The translations under genes and the position numbers were made by a program. The notes under the pieces were generated by a model, which had not been told where the DNA came from, did not search any database, and saw only the letters and a program-made list of their open reading frames with translations. A DNA stretch of 63,861 nucleotides, filler included, from Hyphochytrium catenoides (lineage: Eukaryota > Protista > Hyphochytriomycota), in the NCBI GenBank assembly GCA_900088475.1. It is 8 parts of 8 records of this genome, joined end to end, with 100 filler letters (N's around TTAATTAATTAA, not from the genome) between each part and the next. Parts side by side here need not be neighbours in the genome. Positions count along the whole stretch, not along the records: positions 12,432 to 42,648 come from FLMG01004442.1; 7 more parts are not named here. The stretch is one strand, 5' to 3'. Each line of letters starts with the position of its first letter. Within the stretch, counting starts at the first letter, position 1. Positions 13,410 to 40,500 of this stretch are shown piece by piece.

Positions 13410-14856
13410 ATGGGTGGTCATGCTTCGTGGCGCGTCGAGCGAGCGGAGGGCGTAGATTTTTTGATCGACAGACTCCCAGAGCTTTTGGCTTACGCACAGA
13501 GTGACCCACGGGGNNNNNNNNNNNNNNNNNNNNNNNNNNNNNNNNNNNNNNNNNNNNNNNNNNNNNNNNNNNNNNNNTCCTCTGTACGTCTGTGGCTTGC
13601 AGTCCACCAGTCGTCCAAAGCTTCGGGTGAGCTTGATATCGAACGAGCTCAAGGTTATGGAGAAGCTGACACTCACAAGATCTTTTCTTCTCGATTCCTG
13701 CCAGTTTTGCATTCACAATTTGAGAAGCAGTCAGTGGGCTGCTTGCTGGTAGAGTTTAGCGTTGAAAGCGAGGGCCGTCGGCGGAGTGTTTGTTGCTATG
13801 CTTCGGACGACGAGGCGCTTAGGTATGTTTACGCTCCTCTTCCGAACCTTTTTTGTGACGAAGGTTAGGTCAGAAGCACTAATAATAACTCTGACTTTTG
13901 CTTTCGTAAGGGCGGTTCTCCTCCATGAGGACTTTCGATGGGACATCCCCTCAAGCTTTGCTGGTTGTGCCCTTAACATTAGAACTCTTTATGACGAGGT
14001 TGTGCACAAGAAAGTTGCACCAGGGACTGCATTCTGGTGGGTTCTCTTTGCTCCCCCTTCCCCTATCGACACTTTTTTAAAAATGGTCATCGTTTCTTTA
14101 ACCTATCACCGCAGGTCTGAAGATTGTTTCCTGTACTACTTTGATCAGAGCGATGAAATGAAGGTTCAGAAGGCGTCAGACAAGCTCTCGAATTTTCTTC
14201 GAGAGAATCCACAGTATAAACTTCGTCCACTGACACGAGAGCATGCTCTGCTCGTTAATAGTACCTGGAAGTATGGCAGCGAAGAGACGATGGAGAGGAC
14301 ATATCGGCTTATTGATAACTATCCAACCATAGCCTTATACGTCAATGACAAGCCTGTGAGCTGGTGCCTCTTGCAGGACTACGAGGGCCTTGGGATGACG
14401 TACACCATTGAGGAATATAGAAGGTATTTCATCTGGTCTCAGTCACATTGGCATTACGGTACTTTTCCAAGCTGAAGCTGTCTGTGACTCTTTCTGCCCA
14501 TATTCAGGAAAGGTCTGGGTAAGGTCATCGCTTGGGCGATGGTAAAGGAGCTCACGCGTGAAAACCGTCCTATCTTCTGCTTCATTGTGACGGACAATAG
14601 TGCTAGCTTGAGGATGTATGAAAGTGCGGGCTTTGAAAGGGTCGGCAGGGTAGATTGGTTCGGTTACTACCAAGAGGCTGAGGAGGAAAGCAGCACGGAT
14701 ATTACTGAGGAAAACGCGAAGAGCGTCACTGATGAACCTGCGGGTACTACTCACTCCGCGGTTGAGGCCTCCCAGAGCTCCGGCGTGCCTGAGGTGGTTG
14801 TTCCAAGTGAGGGCGAAATAGTGTCAGGCAACGGGGAGGAGGAAGAAGAGTCATAA
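13410..14856 (+). CDS. GNAT acyltransferase, glycine N-acyltransferase-like/FR47-like, with acidic C-terminal tail (multi-exon, internal N gap)
   Basis: LRPLTREHALLVNSTWKY, PVSWCL..YEGLGMTYTIEEYRR|KGLG (motif A across the intron ~14424-14507) and NSASLRMYESAGF. Confidence 0.85.
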
Positions 14857-17502: not shown

Positions 17503-20258
17503 TTAGGTTCTCCAGGTGCCTGACTTTATGACACTACTTTGCTCTTCTGTCAACGGCACGTACTGCTGTTTGGCCTTGTCCAAAACATAAATGGGGTCTC
17601 CGTCGGCCTGAGCTAAGTCATAACCCGCCAACTTTAGGGGCCCCTTCTTAATCTTCATGGTGCCTGTGATCTCTATGTGCTTAAGAAAGCGAACAAAGAG
17701 AGGCTGAGCATAGCTTGGTAACTTCCCTTGGAAGTGCTCGTAGAGACCCTTTAAATCTTCTTCCTTGCCATCGAGAACGGCCAGCATGCCGGCTCGACCA
17801 TCGTTGCCTGGAACTAGAACTCCATAAACCGTGCAAATTCTACCTGCCCCGAGCTTGCTCATCACCACCTCTTCAACCTCCGCAGTGGATACATTCTCAC
17901 CACGCCATCGGAAAGTATCTCCAATACTATGACGTAAACCACGTAGCCGTCATAAAGGGAACAGAAGGGAAAGAAAGACTTAGTCCGTAGGGCCGGCTCT
18001 TTCGCTATTTTATCTGAACGTCACTTACCGATCCTTAAAATAGTAGTATCCGTCCAGGTCCCTGGTAAGAAGATCGCCAGTGCGGAACCATCTGTCGCCT
18101 TTTCTAAACACGTCCCGCAGGATCTTCTTCTCAGTCTCCGACTGGCCGACATACCCTTCGAACTTTCGCAGTGGGTCCTTGTCATTGATCTTGCCAATTA
18201 GCTCGCCAATCTGATATATGTACCAACATTGCGAATCGGCAAAATGTGACCCAAAGATCTTAAAGTTAGAATTGGAGTTTTGATGGCTAGCGAGGGGCCA
18301 CCATCATTGACAGTTCCACCTCTAAGGTGCTCACCTCTCCAGGTGGACATCGCATACACAGTCCATTCTTCCGCCGGACAACCTCTTCGGCATCAACGTT
18401 AAAGTGGACGGCAGCCACAGGATATAAGGACGTCAGTGTCAGTATCTGATAGCCCACAGCCCCAGGCACATTCTGATTATTGATTATGTTGGCGTTTCCC
18501 TCGGTAGCGCCGTAGAATTCTCCAATTTTCTCGATGCCATATCGTTTCTAGGTGGAGGGGCCACGCATGGCGTCAAATTTTCAGTATCATGTGCGCGCGA
18601 CATGTAAGAGGTCTATCGGTTCAAGTGCCGGTTCACTTCTTTCGGTCACTCACCTGAAAAGCGATCCACGTCTCCTTCGTCAGCCCATTGCCAACAGCCA
18701 AACGCACTTTGTGAGTCCGGTCATAGTCCTTAACTATGGGTTTACGCATAAAGAAGAGGAGATGCTTTTTAGTTGTCAATGACTTTCCTTCAAAGTCGTG
18801 ATGCTAGGCTCCTCGCTTGAGTTTAGTACCTGGAACACTGTTAAGATAGCGAACAATCTCTCCAATGTACTGAACAACTGTTGCTTTATGCTCAGTGCAG
18901 TCCTTAAAGTACTGACTCGCAGAGAACTTCTTCCGTAGTAGTACCGTGCAACCACGGATTACCGCTTGTCCGACACCAATAATCCCGCCAGATCTGTGAA
19001 TAGTTGAAGCCGCACCATGACAGTGAGATGAGCAGGAGGCATAATCGATAAACAGCAGCAGCAATAGGATACTAGCTCTCTCTCTTACGAATGATAAATA
19101 GGTAGTGGCGTATAAATAATGTCGTCCTCCTTGATGCCAAGCATCTCAGCTGGCCCGTAGGTCGTAGCGATATACCGGGTGTGGGTGACTTTAGCAGCCT
19201 TAGGAAGCCCTGTGGTGCCGCTGTGGGCAAGCATCGTAAAGGAGGACGGAGAGAGAACACTAAGAGAAGTATAATTATTATTAGGTCTGGGGTGGTGGCG
19301 GTACCTCGTGTAAATCATGAAAAGCACGTCCGTGAGCTTCAAGATAGGCTGAACAAATTGAGCTGTCTCTGACTCCTTGGTGGTAAGTTCATCCAAGGCC
19401 TCAAATCCTTCTACAGGTGGCCCGAAGCTAAACACTCGATAGTCTTTGAGGCTGTCTTTAATGTCCTGGATGGCTGGAACCAGGTCACTCCCGGATATGA
19501 CCCATTTGGCACCGGCCACCTTGATACTAACGCAGAGGGCGGACAGTTAGGCACTAGTAGATGAGGCAACAGTTACCCGGTTTAGCCATGTACCACCGTA
19601 TCATACCTGTGGAGAAGAGGTTGGTCTCTCAGTTGATTGTTAACCAAGGCGACGATAACTCCAATCTTGGCGAACGCCAACCAAGTCTGTACGAATTCTG
19701 GTCGCTGCTCCATGACCAGGGCCACAATATCTCCGTGCCTGAGCCCCTGTTAGGCACAGGGACAAGCCGACTTCTTAGCGTCGTTGGTGTGCCGCAATTT
19801 ATTGAAAAGAAGAGGTTCCCTCCCCACATTCGAAGCCTTACCTGCTTGAAGGCAAAGTTGGCGAGCTTGTTTGAGCCCCTTTCAATCTCATTAAAGGTGT
19901 AATGTCGACCCTCAAAGATAAACATTGTCTTGTCCTGCATTCTTCTAACAGTATCCTGAAACATGGTGGTCACAGAAGCTTGCGCCTTCTCATATCCCTT
20001 ATATCTAATCTGCAACTCGATCACTCGAGCAACAAAGCTGCACGAGAAGCTCGCAGGTTAGCACTTTAGCCGTTCGAAAGGGTAAGCGCTCATTGGCGTT
20101 ACGACGAGATAGCCAAATAACTAGCGAACAGACCTGAGATCGCGGGGCAAATTCTTGAGCTGGTAGTACAGCGCGACTCTGTTTGTGGCAATGTAGTATG
20201 CAAGCGCTAGAAAGCCCGCAACGAGCACGAGAATGCCAATGACGCCACCAAAATCCAT
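17503..20258 (-). CDS. FATP: Long-chain fatty acid transport protein / very-long-chain acyl-CoA synthetase (SLC27/FATP family)
   Basis: N-terminal TM followed by LPRDL. AMP-binding IYTSGTTGLPKAA, YTPLPIYHS, QYIGEIVRYL, EFYGATEGNA, WFRTGDL, RWRGENVSTAEVE and VPGNDGRAGM. Many short introns. Confidence 0.93.
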
Positions 20259-23200
20259 CTTGCCAGCGGGCTTCTTTGACCCTCTACTTCGTCTCCACTG
20301 GAGTGTGTGTGGCGGTTATGATGTGGCTGTAATAAGTGGTTCTTCGTAAAATAGGGCTAATAAGGTACTGATATCTGTTGTCTGAGACACGCGCCTACAA
20401 GCAGCCAGCAGGCATGATGGTCCTAGGTCACGCAGCACTGGCTTTCTTCAGCAGCGTGGTAGCGTATGCGACGGATAACCTGAAGTTGAAGAAAGAAGAC
20501 GACTAACAAAATCTGTTCATCGGCCGTGGGCACCGTTCTAGTCTTAGAATGAATCCCCTTCCCCGGCGGTTGGATAAGCGATATGATAATGTTCAGACGG
20601 CCCAGGGGACACCCTTTGCCTGTTATTGCAGACGCTGCAGGAACGGGGCTGCTGCTGCCTTGGAAAGAACCAGACGAGGCATCAACTCATCGTAAGAGGT
20701 GTGATGTGCTGATGTTCTCTTAGGCAAATACGTGCTATTATAGAGTGTAGAGGTTATTTAAACGGGGCATTATTCTTTTGAGCACACTCGCACTTGGTGT
20801 TGAGCTCCAACCATCTGACGAAGAAGACGGAAGAGGGCAGGACTGGTGCGGAAAGGAGGAGGAACGGTAGGAGCCGACGTAAGAGAGGAGCGTGGTTGCC
20901 ATGAGGAGCAATAATGATGTGCCCGTGCAGGCTCATAGCCAGCCGGGTCTCAGAGCTCATTTCATAAGCCTTGGACTGGTACTATTATTCAAGGCGCGGC
21001 GGATGTGTGTGGGTTGTTAACACAGCGTTAAGGTTGGGGTAAGGAGGCTAGGGCTTGCAGGCTGAGGTTACAGGAGAGAGAAGGGACCACCATCCAGGGA
21101 GCTGATGTCCGTTACAGCCTGGCCAGCATACCGCAGCCTGATCCGGCATAAAACTATTGAGGTTCTTGATAACTCACTCAAGAGCGCAATTATTCTGGAA
21201 TCGTTCCGGTTGATCAGTGTAACACCCCAAGACAAGTCAACAAGGAGCTGTCGGGGTAGAGGCAAAGCGAAGAAGGCGGCAGGACCTGTAAGAGAGCGGA
21301 GATGGGCCCTCGGCCTCTCACTGTAACGAGGAGGAGAAAGCTGTACCTGATTTGCCAACGAAGTCCAAAGGGAGGAAAGTAAGGAAGGCGTACGTATAAG
21401 GGTGCTTTGTGAAGAAGGAGAAGAGAAGATAATAGGAGGATTCCGACCTTGTTGATTTTTCTTGTGCTGGTGGTAGTAAATATGGCCCTTCGTTTTCTTC
21501 TAATTTTCTGCCTTATTATAGCGTCTTTGGTGATGGAAGCAGTCTGTTGTACAGCGCTACACTATGTTTGCCTGGTGGTGAAGACTCGAGAGTACGTGTT
21601 CCTCTATAAAGCAAAGCATTTGTGTCCTTCTTCCCGCCCGCCCCAAATTCCTCTTCCTCGTCAACCAATATCATCTTCCTGCCGCCTAATCAGGACGACG
21701 AAGTTAATCACGTTCTTCCAACCTTCGCAGTACTTAGTACCTTGTTGCTCCTTTCTAGGTGCCTCAAGGTTGATGCTCATCATGATGGTGACCTCTTCTC
21801 CCACCATCCCCAGCTAGTCTTTCGTCATCAACAAGCGGTTGTTTGTCCCTTGCTACATCGTCTTCTACTCCGGAGTATTATAATAGCCACGGGATTTTCG
21901 ACGATTTTATGAGCTATGTAGAAACTTCTGGTAGGTTTATTACTACGTCATTGATGCTACCACTATGCTGCTCATTCTTGCTGGTAACGTTTCGGGGAGA
22001 ACCAAGAAATCTCGTTCTTGAGACTGTTAGCGGACCGACCAAAGTCCGCTGCCCCTGCCGCCTGTGCCGCCTCGAGACCGCCTTCACTTTAGACATAGCT
22101 GCCAGATTTGGTAATTTGTGGCGATGTTCATCATGCCGCCGAATCCAGCAGGAGCAACAACCGGATGGTACCAAAGATCTTCAGCTCTCTCGTGCGCGAA
22201 CAAATGCTGGCTTATAGTTTCGTTGTTCTTGGGCATTGTGCGGTGGGTTAGATGGTGGTGTGTTGGTCTTCGTAACAGTCTCAGAAAATCTCAGTATCGC
22301 TGACTGGCTCTTGTCTTGGCTGGTAATAAAATAGCTGATTGTCGCTTGACTGCCCTCCCCGCCACTGTGGTTCTATCAGAAATCCCTTCTTCTTCTGTTC
22401 CTCCTCTCCTTTCTTGGTTATTATCATTCTTCTTCTATTCTTACTCTTTGCGCTATTGTTGGTCCTCCAGTGACAGAAAGCCTCATCAGCCATTCCTGCT
22501 ATTTACCCTGGCTCTTCCTTCCTTCGTCTTCTGTCATTCTGTTCCTAGGTCGTCTTGGTGTGCAGGGTCTTTCAGCATGCAATATCAAATAAGAATTGCG
22601 ACAGGTGGACGTGTGATGTAAGAGGAGTGGGAATCGAGCAAGAGGCATAAAGATGCTTGGTCCTTACTTTGGCGGGCTAGGCTTCAGTTCAGACAGCACC
22701 ACGCAGAGAAAGACTTTATGAGAGGAGTGCTTTTCCACTCCTGAGAAGTTATTGGATCATACAAAGATGGTAAAGCTTTACTCTCCCTTGTGACAGGGTC
22801 AGTCTCCCCAGGAATGCAGAGATAGAGATAGAAGCATGCAAGGGAGATTGGATAAAGGAGCTAGCCTAAGGACATGCACAGAGAAATGAAAGCGAAGACC
22901 AATAAAAAAGGAAGGAGAGAAAGACGAGTATCCACCCTGCAAGCCACTCACTGACTTCGAGGCAGGACTACCCGTCTTCCTGAGGGTACTCTTGAAGAGA
23001 TGAAGAGGTTGAACCCCCTACATCTGGCCAGTCCCCAACAACCTGGGCTCAGGTGGTGTTAGTAGGAATGTGGCAGATTTTGGTAATCATACGCTACTAG
23101 TGGTAGGAAGAGAGACAACAGGAGGCAAACCATCTCCTTCGTCATCTTTTTTAGAGGAGCTGATAGCAGCATCACCATTGGCCTTATCTTTTTGAAGTCA

Positions 23201-25251: not shown

Positions 25252-28200
25252 ATGGCGCTGAACCTTCAGGAGTTTGAGATGGCTGTCGTTTGTGCCTTTT
25301 CGATGGCACATACGGAGCCAAAAAGCGACCAGGATCGAGCACTCAAACAACAGGCGACCGCCTTCTGTGAAAAGGTAATATAGGGATAAGAGGGATCTAT
25401 CTGCTGCTCTCCCCTTCCTGAGCTCACGTGGTGCTTTCCGTGTAGGTCAAAACACTTCCTGACGCTTGGAAGCATAATTTCCAACTCTTTACTTCTGCAA
25501 CAGCTTCTGAAGCGAAATTTTATGGTCTTCAAACCCTCCAGGTAGCTGTGTGACGTCCCCAGTACTGTTGCAGCTGTTATGCTGACGACAGGAGGGGCAT
25601 GATTGTAGGAACTGTTGGTGAAAGGAATGGTCTCGGAGATTGATCGGAGCCAGTTGCGCCTGGCGCTGCTCGAATGGCTTCAGACAAAAGGTTTAGAGAT
25701 GCAGACGGTGAGCTCCTCGCCCTTGCCAATCCTTATTCGGTCCCAGGAAACTAACCGGGCCATGTCGTAGCTTCCTGCATTTGTGAAGAATAAGATCGCA
25801 GTAGTCCTGTGCCACCTTATCAAAGTAGACTTTCCTGAACGCTGGTCCACGGCCTTTGGTGATCTTCAGGCGCTTTGTAGTCGATCCACGGATCTGGTAG
25901 ACATGTTCCTTCGAGTGCTAAGGATGATGGAGGACGATATTGTAGCTTTCAACGAACAGGTTAGTTTTAGTGAGCTGTCACTGCGAATGGCTAAGGTCAA
26001 TCATCCTCATCTCAGCGTTTGTCTTGCAGCGTGGGGCCGCAGAGATACAGCACAATACCCTGATAAAGGATACGATGCGGTCAACTAGCACGATGGCCGA
26101 TATATTTGAACTCTTTTTCAACGTACTAGTCTCTTACCGGAGCTCTAGACAGGAACTTTGCACTCTCTGTCTAGAGACTATGCAGGTAAAATATCTCAAA
26201 CCCAGCGTGTTGGAGGCATCGCAAATTCTGAGCTTCTGCTTTCTGTTAGTCTTTTATTGGTTGGGCCGATGTTGGGCTTATTGCCAACGACCGCTTCATC
26301 CCTCTCCTCTTTACCTTGCTGGCGGATGGAGATCTCAGAGAAGACGCTTGCTCCTGCCTCGAAGAGCTGGTCAGCAAGGGAATGGAGGAGCAGAAAAAGT
26401 TTGAGCTGCTCCGTCAACTGAACATACTTGAGGTCTGTGTTTTGCTCTCTTCCTGTTTATACATTCTATTTAGCTCTTGTGATTCGACGTCATGGCAATG
26501 TCTTACAGGTGCTTCGAGGACTAAGAATTGATGACGTTGACTTCGCCGAAAGTGTGGGAGGACTGGTGAATATTATTGGGTTGGAACTAATCCAGTGTGC
26601 GGAGGCCTTTGAGCCCGATGGAGAGAAGAGCGAGCTAGCCGCAAAGGCGACAGAGATGCTAAAGGTGTGCAGGAGCCAAAAACCGTACTACTCGCTCTTT
26701 CATTAAATGTTTACTCTCGTGACAGGAAGCACTTCCGCTTATCTTCACCCTCTTTGGTCATGAGGAGATCGGCGTCAGCAGCGAACTCTTTGGCACGGTG
26801 AATTCTCTCATTAACGATATGAAGCGGCAGAAAGGTCATCCATTAAAGAGCTACTCCCTGGATTTCTCAGATATCATTGAAAAGATCTTTGGGATTCTAC
26901 TTCAGAGAATCCGGTAAGCCCAGAGCCATACTTGTGATGCAACGGATGGGGGAGTGACCATGCTTGGATCGCTAGGTATCCAGAAGGGTTTGACTACGAG
27001 GCAGTTAACAGCGAGGAACATGCAGCTAGAGAAGAGTACCGTTCTGCGCTCCGTAAAGTGTTCGTGAACACGACAAGGTAAGTTCTCTTTGTCGACTAGC
27101 GTACGGCATAGCAGTCACTCACAGCATCTGCGTAGAATCTATCCAGAGAAGATACTGTCACTAATTTGCGCGACTATGGGAGACGTGCTACCTCGATTCC
27201 GGAGCATCGGGCCTCCTGACCAAGAGGCAGCCTTGTACTTTGTCCATCACTTCGGTGAGGGACTCACCACAGCCAACCTACAGTCCCTTGTCCGCGAAGG
27301 GCCTTTCCCTGAGTTAATTAGCGCTATACATCAGTGTATACTGGGGTCTGGGCCTGCCCTTCATCACAGTGTTTTGCTCGTCTACCACGATATAACAGTT
27401 AGGTACGGGGCTTATCTAAACTTGATGCTGGGCTTCCAAGTGGATTCTCACTCGTGACTTTAGGTACTCGAAAGTTTTGAAGAGTGCTCCCGGACTAATT
27501 CCTGCAGTGCTAGAGGGAATGTTCGGGCCCCTGGGACTCTCGAATCACAATACGACAGTGCGCAGCCGCGTTTGCTATTTGCTTACTCGGCTCTGTAAGC
27601 AGCTGGGAGGAGATATCCAGCCCTTTGCGGAGAGCGTCCTCCGAGGAATTGAACCGCAGCTGGTCGTTCCTCAAGTCACTCAGAAGAATGTTTTGCTGAC
27701 TTTCGAGGACCAGCTCTATCTGTTTGAGCTAGCGGGACAGATGATAGGTAGACCCCTGCATCGATTACTGTTGTCGCCTCAGTGCTTTCATCTCACATTC
27801 TCTAACGCGTCGCCTTCCGCGGTTTACAGCTATCAATCCGTCTGACAGCGTCCAGCTTCAATATCTTCAAATAGTTCTGGGCCGGCTGGCAGAGAATCTA
27901 GATGCCGCATTGCACCACCCTGCGCTGAACACAGACCCAGAAGCCATTGGACTCTGGATGTCCAGAATTATAGCTGCAATGGGGCACGTTAGCAAGGCGT
28001 TTAAGAGCGTTCCAGAAGGGCTGTGTCCAATATTTATTGGGGTGGTGGAGAAGGCTGTCATGGCCCATGCCGCCTTACCAACTCATGACGCAATGCGCTC
28101 CAAGGTATGACCGAGCCCGGTAGGGACTTGGGACTGCACATGGTCTGACATTATGCCTTTAGATAGTCTTTTCTTTTTTCACTAAACGATAGCGATTCTT

Positions 28201-29335
28201 CACATGGTCTGACCCTTTGCACTTTAGATACTCTTTTTTTTCCACAGAATGATAGGAATTCTCGGCGCCAAGTTTATCCCATTTGCTCAAGTGCCTGTAG
28301 TTAATCTGCTTACTCACATGAGGCCCAACAATGCCCTAGAGATCTTTCATTTGATCAACCAGCTTGTAATCACGTACAAGGTAGATCACAATCTAACCGT
28401 CTGATGACGGTATCCATCAAGATGCTTAACACAAAGTATAGTCGCAGGTCTTCGCCATCGTTGATGGTATCTTCTTGCCATTGGTACAGAAGGTCGCAGA
28501 TATTAGTCAGCTAGGCGCTTCAGCTCTGCACGAGGCGCAGGTAGAGGCCAGAACTGAAGAGGAAGCAGAGAAGGTGGAAGTACAGCGGACCTTCTACCTG
28601 TTCCTCTATCATCTCTGTTCTAATGATTTATCGCCCCTCTTGGTTAGCCCAAGTAAGTGCCAACATCGCAGGTCTTGTTGATCCCTGCTTATGACTTATG
28701 TTGGCCCTCTAAAAACTCTCTAGCAAATTGGCCTAACTTCGGTCCTATTTTGAGTCTATTGGCCTATGGCTGTAAGGATGTGCCAGATCTTCAGGTGGGT
28801 AACACCAGTTCTTGGCCGGAACCTTTGTGCTAAATTATTCCCTCCGCCCTTGTTCTAGGCTAATAAAACCTGCTTCACGATTGCAAGAAGCATTCTTGAA
28901 GCTTGGTTCAAGCCCGGTGATGCTCTCCAGGCGGCTGCTGTGACGGTTTCTGAACAAGCGAAGACTGCTTATGCGCAATTTGTCTATCAGGAGGCGACAC
29001 CAGCGGTCTTTTTATGCCTTCGCAGGAAGCATTTCGACGTCAATGACATCCAAGCTATAGGTGTAAGTGCTCTATACCTCGGCACTGGTTCTCAGCCCAC
29101 GATTGATGAATCACATTGCTTCTCCCAGTGTATGAAGGAGATGTCCCTGCTATTGAAGCGGAGCTCTAACATCTTTGGCTCTGAGTATGTTCGGTACCTC
29201 TCGGAGATCTGCTCGTCAGCAGCTGGATGCCCTCCCAATGTGGCATCTACCTTTGCGGCGAGGGTGCAGCAAGCCGTAGACAAGGATCTCATGCTTGCAA
29301 TGAAAGAGCTGGCGAAGGGGCTAACAAAGTCATAG
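25252..29335 (+). CDS. XPOT: Exportin-T (tRNA exportin, Los1/PAUSED)
   Basis: MALNLQEFEMAV..ALKQQATAFCEK, FVKNKIAVV..DFPERWSTAF, HNTLIKDTMR, VRSRVCYLLTRLCK, FEDQLYLFELAG and RSK|ILFFFHRMI. About 20 short GT-AG introns. Confidence 0.88.
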
Positions 29336-30187: not shown

Positions 30188-30539
30188 CCCAGTGTTATCT
30201 GGATAACGTTCAGTTCTCTATAGACCAACAACTCACTTTTCAGGTGCGGGCCTGCGGCCTGGTTCGAGCTCTCCCGATCTCCAGATCTTTTGTTCCCTCA
30301 ATCTCAAGGTGAAGGAGGCACAGCCTTTCTTCCATCATCACCATTGATGAGAAGCGATTGGCGATTGGCATCATCTTCGCCTTTTCTGTGAGTCTCTTTG
30401 GGTATTCGACCCACAAACAGCTCTGCAAACAACGAGGAGAACTGACGTTAACGGCTCTGGGGTAAACTCTTGAAGCTTTTGCCAAGCTGTCCTCGCAGCA
30501 CTTTTAGAAAATAACAGGCCAGCAGCAGGTCAGCAGAAC

Positions 30540-31850
30540 TCGTGCCTGCTTCATTGCTTGCCTCCTTCCTCATGTCTCCCCGCGCGACCTCTTACTGACC
30601 GCTACGCCTGCCTTCTGATGCTGCTGCCTGTTGTCTCCATAGCTCTGCCTCCTGCCTCTTTCTCATCGCCGTCATCATACCTTCCTCCTGCCTCGCTGTC
30701 TCTTGCTCCTGCTGCTGCCTCCTGCTGCTGCCCCGTGTGGCTCCTGTGCTACGGACCCCTGCCTCCTGCCCCTACTGCGCGGCTACCTCTTGTTTCCTAG
30801 GGTTCCTTGTCTCCTAGGGTTTTCTCGTTTTTATTGTGGTGCCTGTATGCCTTCTACTGCTTTGGCTGCCATCTGGTGCAGCCTTCTGCCTCCCAGCTAT
30901 CTCCTGATGTCTCCTGCGTCCCGCTATCTACCGCCTGCCCCTTGCGCCTTGCGCCTGCCAATTAAATATCTCCTGGCTCCCGCCTCCTCTGTCTTCCCAC
31001 AACCTGGCACTGCATTATACATCCTGCCTGCCTCCTCCTACTTGTCGCCTACTGCTGCCACCTCGAAGTTTCACAGTCTCCTGTGTTATCCTGTTCCGTG
31101 TTTCCCCTGCTGCCTCTTGCTGACCGCTTGCTGTCACTTCCTGGTGGTGCTGCGTTCTGCCTCCTGCCTTCCTGTCGCTCGGCTTTACCTTGCCTCCTCC
31201 TACTGCCCCCCGCTTGCTTTGTGTGCCCGCTGCTGCTGTCCCTTCTGCTACGGGCCTTCTCCATTGTGATGTCTTCCGGCTTCGTGCTGCTGCCTTCTGC
31301 CTCCTGTTGCTGTCTTTGCCTCCTGTCCCGTACAACCACACTCTATTGCCTTGCTGCCCCTCCTCCTCTCTTGCTGCGTCCTGCTTCGTTCTGCTGTTGC
31401 ATTTTCGTACTACTCCTGCTGCCTCGCTGATGTCTCTGACTTCATGCATGAGCTTGTACCGCCTCCTGCCTCCTACTGCCTCCAGGTTGCAGCCTCCTGC
31501 TTGCTGCCCCTGCCTGTCGCTCCATCTCTCCTCCTGCTGCCCCTGGCCTGTCGCTCCATCTCCCCTCCTGCTGCCCCTGGCCTGTCGCTCCATCTCCCCT
31601 GCCTCCTGCCCCTGGCATGTCGCTCCATCTCTCTTGCCGCCTGCCTCCAACTGTGGCCTTCATTTTTGCCTTCTTTTACCTCCTGCTAACGCCAGATCGC
31701 TGTTGTTTCGACCTGGCTCCTGCATAATTCTGTTTTGGTCTTCTGGCTGCTCCTTTTGCTTCATCTTGGCTCTTGTTACAATGATGGTGGCCGCCCCCTG
31801 CTGCCTCTGCTACTATAACTGTACCTCTCTCCTGTTGCTGGTTATAAATG
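30540..31850. repeat. Degenerate CTGCCT/CCTGCT-rich low-complexity array including a ~34-bp minisatellite (31512-31632, ~3.5 copies)
   Basis: Recurrent ctgcctcctgc. The unit gcctgtcgctccatctc(t/c)cctcctgctgcccctg starts at 31512, 31546, 31580 and 31615. Confidence 0.8.
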
Positions 31851-32829
31851 GTCCCCTCAGCTTCCCTTTCTCTGCTTGCTTTACAAACCCTAGCCTTTTT
31901 TGCCGTCGTAACTGGCCGTCCTCATTACAATCTCTTAACTCTCCTCCCGTCTCACGCTGCTGGGGCATCATACATAAATGGTAAACCATTGTCCCTCCCC
32001 CCTCCTAACTCAGTGTGTCTCTTTCACTCTAGGCAGGCCCTCCCTCTCTTTCTCTGTCTCTTTTGTGCTCTTTGGCTTGTCGAAGTTCACCCATGCTTTC
32101 CTGTTTTCCCGCCAGCTTTTCCTCCTAGTGGTCACTTCCTCTTGTTGCCCTGAGTTTACCTTACTTCCTCTGTCTTCCTCTTTTCGCTCTCATTCACACG
32201 ATATCCTTTCTTTCCTAGACATGCTCTTTCTATCCTCTTATCCGATGTACACGGCGAGCCTCCAATAGCTAGCCCGGCTACTCTTGTCTCTCATTGCCCT
32301 CAGATTTGTCCTGGTGTAACATGAAGGTAGCTTCTTCTGATCTTCTTGCTTGTGTTCTTCTCTGTTTCTTTCTCCCTACGGCTACTTTTGACCACTTCTT
32401 CCTAGATTTCGAGCTTTATAGCGCCCGCCCATCGCTCCCTTGACTTTATGTCTGTCTCTCTCTTCATGGACGTTCATCTGTCCTTAGAATCGCCTTAATT
32501 CATAGGTGGCGGCCCACGCTTTATCTTGTCGCCGCTTATGAGTTAGTAGTTGCCTGAAAAGGCAAGGGTAACAAGAAAGAAGTAAGCATGAAAAAGAAGG
32601 AGAACAAGCAATAGCTACGAAGTCTTCGTCTGTTTCAACTCCCCCGTCCACCATCGACAAGATAATCAAAAAATGAGCCACAGTAGTTGACTTTCTCAGC
32701 AATAACAATAGGAGAGAGACGAGGGGAAGAAAGGGCACACAAAGCCATTATCACCCTCGAGTAGGCCAGCAAGAGGAAGAGTCCAACTATTGAAGAGAAT
32801 CGCTTCAAATATCAGCGCATTTCTTCTGG

Positions 32830-34150
32830 CACACAGTGGCTAACCTCTAACCTGTCACTGACCGCTTAGCATTGGGGTTAACCACCTCAGCTTGCTTCTG
32901 GTGCGGCACTTAGTGCTGAACGCCTCAGCAGACCATCTATGTTGGTCCTGGTTAGGATTAGGATCAAACATCAGTACTGGTACGTAGTAGTAGGCTGGCC
33001 TAAACCTGGAACCGACTGGCACCTATACCGCCAATAGGTTGAGGCTGGCATCATGGTTGAGGCTGGCATCTATGCTGACAGACAGGCGGGGGCTGCTTAA
33101 GGACTATGGTCAATCATCAACAATGCTTAGCCTGGGAAGAAGCTACCGCGCTAAATAAACTGCCACTGGGACTGACACCTAGGCTGATATCTCGGCAGGC
33201 AGTTAGATTATCCACTAAGCTGATAACAAACCAGGGTGGAACCTACGTTTGCTATAGGTAGGCTGACAACAAACAGGCTAGAACCTACGCGGGCAAGCAC
33301 CTAGGGGTTGACAGGCAAATTTGCGCTAATAAAAGGGAGAATCACCAATAATGCTGGTAGCTATCAGGTTGGCCTAGAGGGCGGCCCTAACAATAGACTG
33401 GCACCTACAATGACGACTACCTAGGCAGCCACCTACCCTGGCTTGCACCGAAGAAGGACCATTCAAGCTGCACCTACTTGACTGGCCGGGTTCTAAGCTA
33501 CTGGACACCTTGGGGTGGTATTTAGCAGGCGACTACGGCGGCTTGCACCAAACCATGCACTAAGCGGCCTCCTAGGCTGGTACCTATTTACGCTGATATC
33601 GAGACTGATGAGACGTAGGGCTGCAAGTTAGGCTGACACTTACTAAGGCTGACAGCAAGACTGGCATCAAATCCAACTCCAAGGCGTACCTAGCTTTACA
33701 CCTACGATGGCGTTTTCCCGCCTAGCTGCCATCCACGGCTGACAACTCTAAGCTGCTGACACTTACGGCTGGCACCTAGCCTCTTACGTCGTAGGCTGGT
33801 ATCTAAGCTGGTACCTAGTCGCACCTTCGCGTGGCCACCCTGAGTGGCGCTAAGGAAGAGGAGACCTATGGCACCTAGGCCCGCACGTAAGAGTTTGTAC
33901 CTAATCTGGCGCCGCAAGCAGGCTAGTAGTACCTCGAAAATTTACCCAGGTCAGCACGTGCTGCGCACGTACGGTGGCATGTAAGTCCGACGCCAAGGCT
34001 GATACCTCAACCGGCGGCATGAAGGCTTGCATCAAGGCTGGCACCTACTAGTAGGTTGGTCCCTGGCAAGCTGACGCCTACGCCCGCAAGCAGGCTAGCC
34101 ACACACCGAAGGCAGCTATCTAGGATGTCATATGAGGTTGTCACGTACAA
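32830..34150. repeat. Degenerate ~12-bp satellite (consensus ~GGCTGGCACCTA), left block
   Basis: Many variants: ctggcaccta, gctgacacctag, ggctggtatcta, ggctggcatc. Confidence 0.75.
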
Positions 34151-35320
34151 TACTCAGGAGGCCGTCCGCGTAAGGATCGTGGGCGCTTTTCCAACGGGCC
34201 TATGTTAGGCTTATACTGTATTAAGGGCTGTACTGACCGCCCAAGAATGTGGGCGCCGGACTTTTCTATGGGGTTTCACTGTATATGAGGTAGTCCATAC
34301 ATATGTACTGTGGACGGTGAACAGGGTTAATGTTAGGCTTAGTTTGGCGCCCACTTATGCCACTTCCTCCCTAAGATAATGTTCTGCACCTATGTGGGCG
34401 CCGAACTAATCCTGTCTTTTGTTTTGAGTCACATGTCCCAGGTGAATAAGTATGGCCTAACGCTCTGACCTATATAGGTAGCTGGGTTAATAATAACGCT
34501 ACTGCTCTCTTGGATTGCTGCTAACCTATTATCCAGGTTCCGGCTGGCCCACCACTTCAGTATCTTTCTGTGATTTGTGGGTTTGTGGGTTTGGCCCATG
34601 GTCCATTTGAGGTCATAGCGTTTTATGAAAGAACGAGATCATCTGCATCTGCATCATCAGTGCTGGTTCGCCTCTGGCTGCTGGCAACAACAAGAGGCAG
34701 AGCAACTGGCGGAGGACGAGCTGCAGGAGGCGCGGGAGCCATTGCCAAAATTCTATATCAGATAATGAGAAGATGGGACTTAAGAAAGGCAGCAGCAACA
34801 ATAGTACCAAGACGAAGAATTATTATCAGCATCATGGTGGAACGAGAAAGTTGAGCTAGCTCAAGCAAAGAGGCAGTCAGCAAGAGAAAGCAAAGAGAGG
34901 CTTCGAGGGAAAAGGCAAAAGAACAGCACCAGATCTCTAATAGATTTAGGGAGGAACGGAAGGATAATGACTCAAGGGAGATTGACGGTGGCTCAAAGAG
35001 AAAAAACAATGGTGCTGGTGGTGGTAGCGCTGCCGCATACCCCTTGTTCTGCTCTCCGCTCTCCACTTCTATACCTGCTGGCGACACAGAGGAGAAGATA
35101 TCTGGGGCTGCAGAGGCTCAGGCTACAGCTGCCCATGATGCCTCCAACACCAAAGAGAAGACCACAACGAAAAGCCTCAGGGTGCAACCTCTGATGTCCA
35201 CCTTCTTCAAAGCCGTAGTAGTAGGGGCAGCGATAATCCCTCCTGCTTCATTTCATGGTATGAATAGGACCCACAGGATCATACACAAACTACCAAACCA
35301 AACTAGCTTTTCTTAAGCAG

Positions 35321-36198
35321 TTCTCTACTGCCACTATTGTCCTTCTCTGGACGGGGCGCAACCACTATGATGTGCTTCTAAGCCAAGAGGATCTCGCCAG
35401 GGAGTGTGCGGCACCCTCCTCTCTACTACCCAGGCTTGGCAGGGACAAGGCGTGCTTCCCGCATGTCCCTGCAGAGCTACTCTTTGGGCCAGTTAAGCGA
35501 GTTCGGCACCTTTGTCCAGCAGACGGTCGTTGTCTCTTCGTCGCGTTTCTTAGAGGTATGCGGTGGTCCAGTGACCACCACCCGTTAGACGCCTGTCTAT
35601 CTTACAACGATCTTCTCCTAGACCTGAAAGCCTATGCTGAAAGTAACCAGAACGCGCTATTGAGGTTCTTTAGGGACAAAATTGTTGACGCTACTATGCT
35701 AGAGTTGGGTTGACAAAGGAAGAGACCTTCAAGACCAGGATATCGGCCATCTTTGACGAGATGGAAAGTTTCTACCATACGCCTGTTGGTGACCTCATGC
35801 CGAATATCCTTGCTGCATCATGTTATGGAGTATGCTTGAAAATCTACAACCGTATGCCGGGTCAACCCTCTCCACTCGTTGTCGACATCGATGGTTCAGC
35901 ATTGTCTAGCTACGGTTGCCAGGCTCAAAGCAGCAAGACAAGGATTGGTGATGCCTTTCGTGGGTCAGTCCTTCCAGCGATCGTTGTGCTGCTAAGGGCT
36001 AAAGATCATGACGATTCAACGATGATATCAATTGGCCACCTTAATGACACTGAAAGAGCTGGGCCCTCGCTGGGCACTTGCCTACTGTGTCAAGAAGACG
36101 TTAGGTTTGTGGACAGCACTGCAACGCCAAATACAATGAAGGGAGGAGGTAGGTGCTGGACCTCGTCATGCCCAACAATCCTGCCCCCATCTATCTGA
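35321..36198 (+). pseudogene. Decayed OTU-like cysteine protease cargo (His box of one domain plus a second, frameshifted domain)
   Basis: IVLLWTGRNHYDVL, then CPADGRCLFVAF (Cys box), GDLMPNILAA and VLLRAKDHDDS. Frameshift at ~35710. Confidence 0.65.
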
Positions 36199-36654
36199 CA
36201 ACTCTATCTCCTCCCTGGAGCAGGCAGGCAGAAGAAGCAATCCATCATCGCATCTTTCCTCCTTCAGCCATCGATGTCCCATGAGGAGCAGGCACAAAAA
36301 AACTCTCTTCTTGACAACACTACAAAGACAAGGACGGGGCCTGTAGTGACGACGGATGTAAAAGAAGAGATTCAATCAGGGACTGCTGCTACCAACGAAG
36401 ATCCCACGTACCCTCCGCAGAAGGTGCAACGAAGGGCGAGTGGGGATCATGGGAATTATGGAGACGCAAGGGCAAAGAAACGGCAACCAAATTTCTCTTT
36501 TTCCCCCCAGAAAGCAACGCCGATATACCTTTCTCTGGAGACTTCTTGGAAGAATAGGTACACATCATCATCTGACGGTGGGCAAATAACTTTAATAGAA
36601 CGAGAGAGAGACACAACAGGAGAGAGAGATGCAGAGAGCCGGAGGAAGAGAGAG

Positions 36655-36694
<40 letters not shown>

Positions 36695-36924
36695 ATATAG
36701 GGGGAGAGAGAGTGAGAGAGAAGAAGAAGAGAGAGAGAGAGAGAGAAGGAAGACGAGGGTAGGGGAAGAGAAAGAGGGAGAGAGGAGACGGGAGGAGGGA
36801 GGGAGAGAGAGGTTGAGAGAGAGAGAAGAGTTAGGAGAAGGATGGGAAATTGAACTTTCGTAAATCGACATCATCACGACCTTTTCGTTGCATATGTCTT
36901 TTAATCTTCTCTTCTCCATTACCA

Positions 36925-37265
36925 GAGAAATAGCAGAGGAAGAGGGAATGGGCGTCTATGGGGAGCCCTACCGGAAGTTTTCAAGATTTACGTCGCAGCA
37001 GCTGAGCTTCTTGGAAAAGATGTTCAACCTCCACCTCACGGACCCGAAGCAGAATGTGATGTCTCCAGAAGGGACTCACAGAAGGATGCTACTCCGATTC
37101 AATGAGGGCAAAAGCCCATTTGCGAGATAGTTCGTTCTTACGGTGATCCAGATTAGGGCGAATTTTAGCTACCTGGCTAGCACCAGAAAGGCGAAGAAGG
37201 TGAATCCGACCATCCCACACGACGAATCTCTGGAAGAGGGCGGAGAAGATCTGCAAAACCAATGA
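36925..37265 (+). pseudogene. Homeodomain-like/HTH exon with an in-frame TAG (37128-37130)
   Basis: RKFSRFTSQQLSFLEKMFN...SPE....M..RFN...*FVLTVIQIRANFS. Confidence 0.45.
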
Positions 37266-37509
37266 AGAAAATACAGTGTAAAAGGAGACGAGGGTTAAAT
37301 TTTTGACACTTTGATTGGAAGATAGAGAGATCATCTTCTTTACTATTGGTTTTCCAATATTCTACATATATGTAACGTGCTGCAGCTCCCCATGGTTCTA
37401 CAGTACTGTTCTACCTTCAGCTGGAGGTGGATGTCCCACTCCCCAAAGTGGGACAATCGGACGAAATTTTGTATTTTTCGTTGAAACTTACGCGGACGGC
37501 CTCCTAGTT

Positions 37510-40500
37510 ACTATGGCGGTACCTAGCCTGACGCCTACACTAGAACCTAGGATATTAGTACCTACGTTCGACACCTAGACAAACACCTAAACTCTATATT
37601 AGGGCTGAACGTAGGGTAGCATCTATGTTACCACTTATGTTGGCACTTATGCTGGCACATAATCTAGAAAGTTGACAGTAAGCTTGGAAGCAACAACAAT
37701 TGCAACAAGGCTGGCGGGAGGCGACTAGGCGAAGCCAGTATTCCTATTGACGATACTTACGGCTAAACACGGAGATCTTATCCTCAGCTTTGTCTTACCT
37801 GTACGGCAGCAATACTTTCTGCCATCTCCCGTCCGTCCCTACAAGCCACTGGTGCTCCTAGATGGTGCCATCATGTGATGACCTACTACAAATTTTTATA
37901 TATATTGGCACGTGATTGTACACGTTGCCACGCTTTTTAGTGTCGAGACGCCAGCCTCCTTCTGTGTCTGGTCTTCCAGACCGTAAGGTGAGATCAGCCT
38001 ATGATAAAGTATCCAGCCCTTTTTCCTTTTTTAGCCAACCAGCACTCCTGCTTGAGACCGACACTGCTGCTTAGGGGAAGAATTCGATACCCCCACCAGT
38101 TCATGAAAACCCAGGTTGCCACACAGACTAGGAGGACTGACATAGGCACGTGCCCTATTTACGCAGTACCATCGCGGGCCACTGTGATAAGGACAGCTAA
38201 GGTGCTTGGGAACAACTCTCCTTGAATAAGTACTCACTGCTGAGCTATACGACTCTTGGTGAAGCAGGAGCACGGTACCGCCTGTATCAGAAAGAGCCTC
38301 AGTACTTATGCTGCTGGACTTGGAGGCGTCGGACTAAAGCAGCATTGCGGTCCCAAGCTTATTGAGAAAGAATTAAGACCTCCATCGTGTTATTACGCAG
38401 CACCCAGAATGTCCTTAATATCTTGCGGATGACGATGTTCCTTTTGGTCTCTTGTGATATTATGACAATCCCTCTACTGGTTGTCCCCAAAGAAAGGCTG
38501 TTGCCTAGGCTGTATCTGATCCGGGCAGGCCCAGAGACTGGGAACCTAAACTCGGACCAAACCGGTAACCATCGCTGGCACAACAATTCCGCGTCCAAGA
38601 GGGCACTATCCTGGTTCATACGCTAGCACCTAGACTGGGTTATTGGCCCGGCATCTAGTTTGGGCGTCAATGCGGATTTCTAGCCAGCTAAGGCTGCATC
38701 TATGTCAGTCCTGCTTAGGGTTAGGCTGACACAGCGGCTGCAACCTATGCTAGCACGTGCAGCTGTCACCTTAGCTGGGCTGTGCCTAAGGCTTTCACAA
38801 TGACTGGGGTCAGGCAGGCTACCATGAAAGATGGCACTTCGACCAGCACCAAGACTGGCACCAAGACGGTACCAAGGCTGGTATCTAGACTTGTTGCGGT
38901 ATAGTGCGGTTGTTGGGATCAAGGCTGACACTAAGCGGGAACGTAGACTGGCACCGTAGCTGGGCTGGTCCCTGAGCTGAAACTGTTAGTTGAGTGCTCA
39001 TAGAGAGGTAATGTTGGATCCGTGCTCTTCGTAGGAGAATGATGTATGAATGAATAATCAACTGACGAGTGCTCATCAAGCTCCTCTTGACTAGAGTTCT
39101 TATTGCTGAAGTACTAAGGTTTCTACCCGCGAGCTATCATCACTGAGCTACTTCCTATACGCTTAAGTCCATAGATAAAAGTGCAACACACGTAAGATAG
39201 AAGTAGTAACGGAGAGAAGTGAGATTCTATCCAAAAAAAAATCATGAAGGAAGAAAGGCTTCTTTCAAGAGCTTCTGTCCTTGTGTCCAGCGAAGAAGTT
39301 CGGAGCGAGAGCGGGATCAGACCTTCCATCTGCAAAGTCTAGCGCAGAAGAGCAGCACGGCATAGTACAGCGACAGTGCGAGACAGACTTCCAGTAAAGA
39401 GTCCGAACGTCTGCAGAATAAGACTGGCACCTTCCGGTTGTTATTGAAGCTAACGCCGAGCACACAGCAGGCTGGTATTTATGCTAATAAGAAGGTTATA
39501 CAGGCTTTTATCAGAACCGCTGGCACCCTACCTAGCTGATCTGTGTGTGCTACTTGCTGGCAGACGTATTGGACCCAGAACTCACGATTGAAAGGCATAT
39601 TCCGACTTTAACCAAGCGCGGGAGGAGTAGTAGTCCGAGCACTTGCTGTCAACAACTGGGCTCTTTTCCTCTTCTCTTCTCTCACTACTGCCCTCGAGAG
39701 TTTTACGACCTACTCTTTCTCTTCCCTTATTATGCCTCCTTTCTTCTGTCTTATTTTCTCAATCACTTTGCCCTTGCTGTTTATAGGATCCTCTACTTAT
39801 TTATCTAGGTAAAATACTCCCTCTGAAGGAAAGTCGCATACAGTAGTTTCCGCGAAAGTCTTCTTCTGCTTGTTTGCCTGCATCAGGGTCTGGCCAGCCA
39901 AGCTAACGACAGGGCTAACGGACTCCACGAAGGCTTTCTTGCGGGTTACTTCTTATCAGGCGTGGACCTACTGAGGTGGCCTATCGGGGTGGCACTTAAT
40001 GTCGATATGAAGCTGGCGGCAGCCAGGAGGGCACCTAGGATGGAAGCTAGGTTATGAAGTTTGAAGCGGACGCCGTTGTTGGCTTGTAAGGCGGGTAAAG
40101 GCTATTTCTAAAGGTGGTGGGGCCTATGGTGGCACCTAGGCTACTAGCATCTCGTAACTAAGTTGACTAGGTTGGCAGTCACATCTGCCACCTAGGGTTG
40201 CACCAAGGAGGAGGAGGGCAGTTATATAGGATGGCGTTTAGCCAGGCAGATACGGGTTGCATCCTACTTCGTAGACTGGACAAAGACTACCAGTTCATAC
40301 CTTACCCTGACAACTCTGATGGCAACTTTGGCTGGCACCTACCAAGCTTTCACCTAACCTGGTCAAAAAAATATCATCTAGCCTGGCGGTAGGGCTTGCA
40401 CTATGTTTTCCCTTAGGCTCGGCCCTAGAATGGCCCCAGAAATAGCACCTTTAGCTGGCACCTAGGCGTACCTCACTCTTTATTATCCCTGCCATTAGGC

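Follow-up and report, generated by a model that had tools for sequence, protein, structure and literature searches.

The window analysed here is a stretch of 63,861 nucleotides of DNA from the genome of Hyphochytrium catenoides. Within its 30-kb piece (FLMG01004442.1, positions 12,432 to 42,648), an inverted-repeat search identified a segment of ~3.35 kb enclosed by terminal inverted repeats (TIRs). Positions 34156–34174 read AGGAGGCCGTCCGCGTAAG, and the exact reverse complement is found at 37487–37505. The 19-nt repeat has these two matches only in the whole window, even with up to three mismatches, and was encountered in none of 100 shuffles of the window. A preliminary description of this DNA had proposed that perfect 19-bp TIRs bound 3350 bp, which is confirmed by both the search and the shuffles. 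Inward of the 19 nt, the complementarity of the TIRs stops. The ends of the element read GAGGCCGTCCGCGTAAG..., perfect inverted repeats of 17–19 nt, and the left and right flanks read ...CAATACTC and AGTTACTATGG..., respectively. The outer AG of the left TIR may be part of a CTAG target copy, in which case the TIR would be 17 nt long, starting at 34158 with GAGGCC. Matching DNA is present in public sequencing runs from the same organism (X1–X3, assembler contigs) and from a soil metagenome (X4), and the contigs were placed on positions 33200–38400. With a probability of about 0.8, the segment is one decayed copy of a multi-copy, CTAG-targeting cut-and-paste TIR DNA transposon, without a transposase and with a broken plus-strand gene inside. 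The element's edges and flanks are as follows.

32800–34152, unstranded: left flank, repeated, CTAG-rich DNA of degenerate 12-nt periodicity (units close to GGCTGGCACCTA); contig depth peaks here, and several paralogous variants of the empty site occur.
34153–34157, unstranded: left target copy, CTCAG, in which an additional C interrupts CTAG; an X3 contig (33908–34206) spans the junction without a difference.
34156–34174, plus strand: left TIR, the perfect 19-nt complement of 37487–37505; the match of an X4 contig begins exactly at 34156.
34248–34407, unstranded: left subterminal repeats, three copies of the 15-nt motif TGTGGGCGCCGRACT, at 34248–34262 (plus), 34341–34355 (minus) and 34393–34407 (plus).
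37432–37481, unstranded: right subterminal hairpins, a 9-bp stem at 37432–37455 (TGTCCCACT/AGTGGGACA) and a 6-bp stem at 37461–37481.
37487–37505, minus strand: right TIR; in X3 contigs and one X4 contig the match ends at 37507, followed by unrelated DNA.
37504–37507, unstranded: right target copy, CTAG.
37508–37720, unstranded: right flank, CTAG-rich 12-nt periodic DNA like the left flank; weaker periodicity returns at 38700–40400.

Mobility of the segment is shown by contigs from which it is missing. In X1, X2 (two contigs) and X3, position 34152 is joined to 37504, with 3351 nt skipped and two ambiguous letters (CT) at the joint. The uninterrupted site reads ...CAATA-CTAG-TTACTATGG..., i.e., AATA-CTAG-TTAC. 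Two further empty-site contigs have an identical right joint and 11 different letters just to the left of it (CACCTAGAATA and GTGTAACAATA), which indicates that the flank itself is repeated in the genome and that other copies of the flank are empty. The ends of the element are also found next to other DNA. An X4 contig matches 34156–34451 with four differences (98.6% identical), starting from the exact outer edge of the left TIR; it is preceded by 42 unrelated letters ending in ...TTAGTTCT, giving the junction CTAG|GAGGCC. At the right end, the match extends to 37507 (...GGCCTC|CTAG) in two X3 contigs, which continue differently, and in one X4 contig; beyond this point the sequence of all three is unrelated. 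None of these alternative flanks has a match anywhere in the 30-kb piece. In X1 and X2, two deletion derivatives were observed, one joining 35122 to 35789 (666 nt skipped, with the filler TACA) and the other joining 35234 to 35298 (63 nt skipped). In all, the contigs gave one alternative left flank (X4), three alternative right flanks (two in X3, one in X4), three empty-site variants and two internal-deletion forms, and those that match the element mostly differ from the window at 1%–4% of positions. Whether judged from the empty-site joint or from the points of divergence, the edges of the inserted segment coincide with the outer edges of the TIRs. The preliminary description had held that TIR pairs confined to this locus would argue against a transposon; both ends occur elsewhere with different flanks.

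The same contigs bear on an explanation without transposition, namely a host gene or pseudogene with a chance inverted repeat, or a segmental rearrangement in the repeat array. Such an origin would sit well with the lack of a clean direct duplication at the window copy, with the host-like introns of the interior gene, and with the absence of any other copy or fragment of the element in the 30-kb piece and of any copy in the JGI metagenome contigs. Chance would not be expected to produce a perfect 19-nt inverted repeat, however, and there are contigs lacking exactly the segment between the repeats, as well as deletion derivatives. The ends also abut unrelated DNA precisely at the TIR edges, including in the independent soil metagenome. 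This explanation is largely refuted and is the least probable of those weighed here.

The target of insertion is CTAG. Five clean junctions, including the element's own right end, read CTAG beside GAGGCC or GGCCTC, and each empty site has a single CTAG, bearing out the earlier suggestion of a CTAG preference. If TA alone mattered, agreement of the outer C and G in 5/5 cases would have a probability of ~0.001. With the ends taken as GAGG...CCTC, the flanks of the window copy had been given as TCAG and CTAG without a clean target-site duplication (TSD), and the sequence reads so. The clean TSD is missing because the left target copy carries one extra C (CTCAG). As CTAG is palindromic and continues the TIR, the junctions read alike whether the TSD is 4 nt, 2 nt (TA) or absent. 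Three models give identical strings: CTAG + GAGG...CCTC + CTAG, with a 4-nt TSD; C-TA + GGAGG...CCTCC + TA-G, with a 2-nt TSD; and CT + AGGAGG...CCTCCT + AG, with no TSD.

The DNA that received the element is periodic on both sides. The identity at a lag of 12 nt is 0.33 at 33000–34155 (z 6.5), 0.49 at 37506–37720 (z 7.8) and 0.32 at 38700–40400 (z 7.1); within the element, with the (GA)n microsatellite excluded, it is 0.27 (z 1.9). Tandem Repeats Finder recovered from the flanks only scraps of two to four units, and the units of the periodic DNA are <50% alike. Of the 12-bp satellite reported earlier, the significant periodicity of both flanks stands and the crisp satellite does not: the flanks consist of repeated DNA, rich in CTAG, whose periodicity is degenerate. 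That the insertion interrupts this periodic DNA, as was also claimed, is seen directly in the contigs that lack the 3351 nt. The density of CTAG is 11 per kb in the left flank and 13 per kb at 37504–38100, compared with 2.8 per kb where the piece is genic, an approximately four-fold difference, since many of the 12-nt units end in CTA and are followed by G. The element inserts into a palindrome that is over-represented in the repeat hosting it.

Parts of the flanks show further peculiarities. The summed depth of X1 contigs, which is not a copy number, reaches 6044 at 33548–33721 and 4192 at 37724–37897 compared with ~400, that is, 10–15 times the neighboring bins, and many loose contig ends fall at 33620, 33638 and 33688. 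These two segments belong to a repeat of high copy number whose boundaries are sharp and which may be another mobile element. Short X4 contigs at 33395–33909, 36964–37106 and 37512–37864 are 95%–99% identical to the periodic flank and the element, indicating that the organism or a close relative lives in the sampled soil.

Inside the left TIR, three of the four matches in the window to the 15-nt motif, which can also be given as TGTGGGCGCC, cluster near the left end. The copies at 34341–34355 and 34393–34407 pair as a hairpin with 23-nt arms (34335–34413; DNA fold z −4.5), and for the right subterminal region taken together the fold does not reach significance (z −1.5). Transposases usually bind subterminal repeats of this sort, and the left copies are candidate transposase-binding sites. 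As the preliminary description had stated, there is no recognizable DDE core: a Pfam search of the element in six frames returned no DDE or other transposase, Rep/helicase or integrase domain. This absence is consistent with a nonautonomous copy, and the window copy is probably nonautonomous. Without a transposase of its own, it would have to be mobilized in trans by an autonomous relative recognizing the same ends.

The plus strand of the interior resembles a multi-exon gene, with successive stop-free stretches in changing frames.

34629–35313, plus strand: 5′ part of the gene, rich in Lys, Arg, Glu and Ser, split by a 4-nt duplication at 34854–34861.
35264–35710, plus strand: open stretch with His motif 1 and an OTU-type Cys-loop motif; putative 66-nt intron at 35556–35621.
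35689–36195, plus strand: open stretch in another frame, with His motif 2 (IVVLLRAKDHDD, 35980–36015).
36558–36925, plus strand: putative GT...AG intron containing the (GA)n microsatellite (36602–36830); its removal joins ...SWKN to REIAEEEG in frame.
36926–37262, plus strand: 3′ exon with a motif like helix 1 of the homeodomain and a TAG stop at 37128–37130.

The candidate introns at 35556–35621, 36149–36223 and 36558–36925 have donors like those of the host's genes (G|GTATGA), and a hand check indicates that their removal keeps the frames. Comparison with other copies reveals that the gene in the window copy is decayed, by a frameshift at ~34854, a TAG at 37128 and a Y-to-D change in a His motif. 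Positions 34854–34861 read AGCTAGCT compared with AGCT in X1–X3 contigs; the duplication shifts the frame and creates a TAG. When it is left out, the frame from 34629 joins the one ending at 35313 (hand check). At 37128, all contigs covering the position have A for T, so that the other copies read AAG compared with the TAG stop here. At 36010, all X1–X3 contigs covering the position have T for G, giving TAC (Tyr) compared with GAC here. Among 26 listed substitutions in the putative exons, 8 are synonymous and 18 nonsynonymous, a near-neutral pattern. Around the duplication, at 34851–34864, the window copy has the palindrome TGAGCTAGCTCA compared with GAGCTC in other copies, a 4-nt tandem duplication (AGCT/CTAG). 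It could have arisen by slippage or be the footprint of another element's visit.

Two kinds of motif in this gene point to the OTU family of cysteine proteases. The Cys-loop motif DGRCLFVA at 35522–35545 has the canonical OTU form, and among 3000 simulated sequences of matching composition it appeared once. His motif 1 (NHYD) is IVLLWTGRNHYD at 35336–35371, and together with His motif 2 it makes two [ILV]3L-x(3-6)-H[YFD][DN] motifs, a combination found in 0 of 3000 simulated sequences. His motif 2 is HDD in the window copy and HYD in other copies, and its spacing from the Cys loop fits an OTU domain. The arrangement DGxCLFxA followed ~110–170 residues on by a His loop of HYD or HYN is thus found here, though the domain is split by the frame change at ~35705. 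The upstream NHYD suggests a remnant of a second OTU-like unit; no internal similarity, at the DNA level or by tblastx of the element against itself, was found as a source of two such units. A language-model search lends independent support: PF02338 (OTU) was the annotation of 93 of the 100 nearest named clusters, with a best score of 0.89 and 156 shared features, which lies below the tool's own bar and is a lead only. From these motifs the gene is probably OTU-derived, and an active deubiquitinase in the window copy is very unlikely.

At the 3′ end, RKFSRFTSQQLSFLEKMF is a 17-residue match to helix 1 of the homeodomain (PF00046 positions 5–21), with 12.7 bits compared with a cut-off of 22.9 and a Pfam E value of 0.12. 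A match of the motif to engrailed in the Protein Data Bank (PDB), with an E value of 0.029, is likewise below threshold. The piece after the stop has no homeodomain match, so that the three helices of the full 60-residue PF00046 domain are not all recovered, and on a hand reading the spacing to the putative helix 3 is ~17 residues too long. What remains of the helix-turn-helix (HTH)-like or homeodomain segment described earlier is therefore a subthreshold likeness to helix 1, with the remainder unmatched. The product of an undamaged gene would run from a charged N-terminal region through 1.5–2 OTU-like cysteine-protease units and a disordered linker to a short tail resembling a homeodomain helix. 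The gene may be an accessory gene belonging to the family itself or a fragment captured from the host.

The single plus-strand gene fills the whole interior, and it could be asked whether the OTU-like/HTH-like protein is itself a transposase of an undescribed kind, or part of one, and the element autonomous or a derivative of the same size. The C-terminal helix resembles a DNA-binding homeodomain helix, all listed indels between copies within the putative coding part at 35800–36400 are multiples of three, and the gene has no detectable homologue, so that annotation leaves its function unconstrained. Against this, no nuclease or recombinase motif was seen in the gene, and the OTU fold is that of a thiol protease, not of a DNA-cleaving enzyme. 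The in-frame indels are all within trinucleotide repeats, a context in which slippage is to be expected; the substitutions between copies look neutral, and the homeodomain match falls below every threshold. It is thus very doubtful that the protein moves the element. It is less improbable, though still unlikely, that the element belongs to an undescribed eukaryotic cut-and-paste lineage with a strict CTAG target, in which a conserved accessory gene of the full-length members would encode an OTU-type deubiquitinase with a homeodomain-like tail.

Several observations weigh against the reading of the segment as a decayed, nonautonomous CTAG-targeting transposon with an OTU-derived gene. The contigs are short (200–700 nt) and the sides of the joints just 25–35 nt; an empty site may represent a paralogous repeat unit and not the allelic site; summed contig depths are no measure of copy number, and the left target copy, CTCAG, is not clean. 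No autonomous copy and no transposase turned up, so both the superfamily and the mechanism of mobilization are inferred. The exon–intron model is predicted from sequence, there being no RNA run among the public runs, and introns do not cleanly account for the frame changes near 35258–35320 and at ~35705. With weak sites admitted, a permissive splice search yields a 740-residue path, which is not relied on, as some open path is always found. For the OTU assignment, Pfam gave no PF02338 match at E ≤ 1 in any piece, and none of the 27 stop-free stretches from both strands and six frames matched any family at E ≤ 1 beyond chance-level rows. The PDB sequences contain no OTU match; phmmer with 35264–35710 returned 0 matches at E ≤ 0.001 among 1.84 billion proteins, and word-indexed searches with 35689–36195 and 35264–35710 returned none even at E ≤ 10. 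In a protein atlas, the best score for 35689–36195 was 0.80, which is uninformative. Of the decayed OTU motifs and encoded deubiquitinase put forward in the preliminary description, the motifs exceed chance and have the language-model lead, and Pfam and phmmer lend no support.

The surroundings of the element are those of a eukaryotic genome with short introns, and the neighboring genes are animal-like (Pfam).

13753–14853: GLYAT-like N-acyltransferase gene.
Within the 30-kb piece: Zc3h12a-like NYN RNase gene.
17506–20057, minus strand: FATP/acyl-CoA synthetase gene.
25946–29332: exportin-T gene.

The GLYAT-like exon had no match in a word-indexed search, and the protein atlas gave generic AMP-binding clusters only. 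Just upstream of this gene, at ~13510–13575, is a run of N (assembly gap). From ~29400 on, the piece is gene-poor and repeat-rich, and it is here that the element is located. An Rfam search of the 30-kb piece returned no match. The region 30430–32430 is strongly C+T-rich (GC skew ~−0.3, AT skew ~−0.5), with long spurious open reading frames (ORFs) on both strands, and 31494–31645 is a tandem repeat of 34–35 nt (4.4 copies, 91% alike). A second inverted-repeat pair, 22955–22979 and 26340–26364 (25 nt, 84% complementary), has a separation of 3360 nt that is near the spacing of the element's TIRs; it overlaps the start region of exportin-T and is probably due to chance.

The 19-nt TIR was also used to scan JGI metagenome contigs. 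It was found at 11 loci, all of them unrelated bacterial matches and none sharing more than 19–22 nt with the element. The string TCAGGAGGCCGTCCGCGTAAG, the 19-nt end with two further bases, is a segment of the anticodon stem and variable arm of bacterial tRNA-Leu(CAG) in soil-metagenome contigs (L006:992-1076, L008:181-265, L009:275-359 and L010:723-807). At L003:3650-3668, the match lies in a partial 3′-half copy of the tRNA that resembles an integration-site duplicate; an intact tRNA-Leu is located ~350 nt away. Two more loci are one other GC-rich contig pair. The likeness of the TIR to tRNA-Leu is treated as a coincidence, chance matches being multiplied by a conserved gene.

As it stands, the element is a fairly ordinary decayed copy of an unclassified family, useful for the repeat annotation of this genome, and its sole unusual aspect is the OTU-like cargo, at the level of motifs only. 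It nevertheless provides a clean and checkable example of a eukaryotic TIR transposon with CTAG specificity, for which public reads reveal filled sites, empty sites and deletion derivatives alike. To our knowledge, OTU cargo has so far been documented only in Helitron-like elements. If it is true that intact copies encode an OTU protease, such cargo would extend from rolling-circle to cut-and-paste elements, and this would hint that tampering with host ubiquitin signaling is a recurrent strategy of transposons.

The OTU-like cargo raises the alternative of a nonautonomous HLE2/Helentron-type Helitron-like element that kept its OTU gene and was moved by rolling-circle transposition. OTU ORFs are known cargo of Helentron/HLE2 elements (PMC4067079; PMC11417382); a short (19-nt) inverted repeat, subterminal hairpins and an internal GA microsatellite are present here, as in those elements, and insertion without duplication is compatible with the junction strings. 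HLE2 elements insert between T and T, and their right repeat is 38–60 nt inward of the 3′ end, with a stem-loop after it (PMC11417382). In the present element, both boundaries are at the outer edges of the TIRs, the target is CT^AG and not T^T, the right repeat forms the very end of the element with no 3′ stem-loop after it, the hairpins are inward of the repeat, and no frame contains a Rep/helicase domain. A canonical Helitron (5′ TC, 3′ CTRR, A^T target) was likewise rejected on the junction strings. Rolling-circle movement therefore appears highly improbable.

The remaining comparisons concern elements with TIRs, as expected for the cut-and-paste transposon favored here. Pack-MULE-like transduplication gives rise to gene-carrying nonautonomous TIR elements. 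The present element is like these in that its TIRs enclose decaying, intron-containing gene fragments and no transposase, and it differs in that no host parent gene was identified and the cargo is without a homologue in the databases searched. In bacteria, IS5 duplicates a 4-nt YTAR/CTAG site. Both IS5 and PIF/Harbinger elements share with the present element palindromic, TA-centered targets and GC-rich TIRs starting with G. The TSDs of eukaryotic Harbinger elements are of 2–3 nt (PMC3627910). PIF/Harbinger, with a 3-nt TWA TSD, was rejected: a 3-nt reading makes the ends unequal by one base, and there are no DDE or Myb-like ORFs.

The reading GAGGCC...GGCCTC gives a 4-nt palindromic duplication, as in Sola (Sola1–3), piggyBac and Kolobok elements; no transposase of these families was detected. 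The latter two duplicate TTAA (4 nt) and are ruled out by CTAG, not TTAA, at all junctions and empty sites. In contrast to Sola2, which has a 4-nt TSD at an AT-rich AWWT target (PMC3627910), the site here is CTAG, and the window copy has no Sola transposase. The TIRs of eukaryotic Tc1/mariner/pogo elements usually start with a CAGT-type sequence; that of the present element does not. Nor does the window copy have, in any frame searched with Pfam, the DD(34–41)E/D transposase or paired-like HTH of the IS630-Tc1-mariner superfamily. The element nevertheless resembles this superfamily in its CTAG target, in its short perfect TIRs and in a cut-and-paste behavior with deletion derivatives. IS630 itself has a 2-nt TSD, with TA duplicated within the target motif CTAG (PMC2577343, Table 1), and when the present element is read as GGAGGCC...GGCCTCC, its junctions take the corresponding form C-TA-element-TA-G. 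IS630-Tc1-mariner and Sola-like elements are the remaining candidates for its superfamily.

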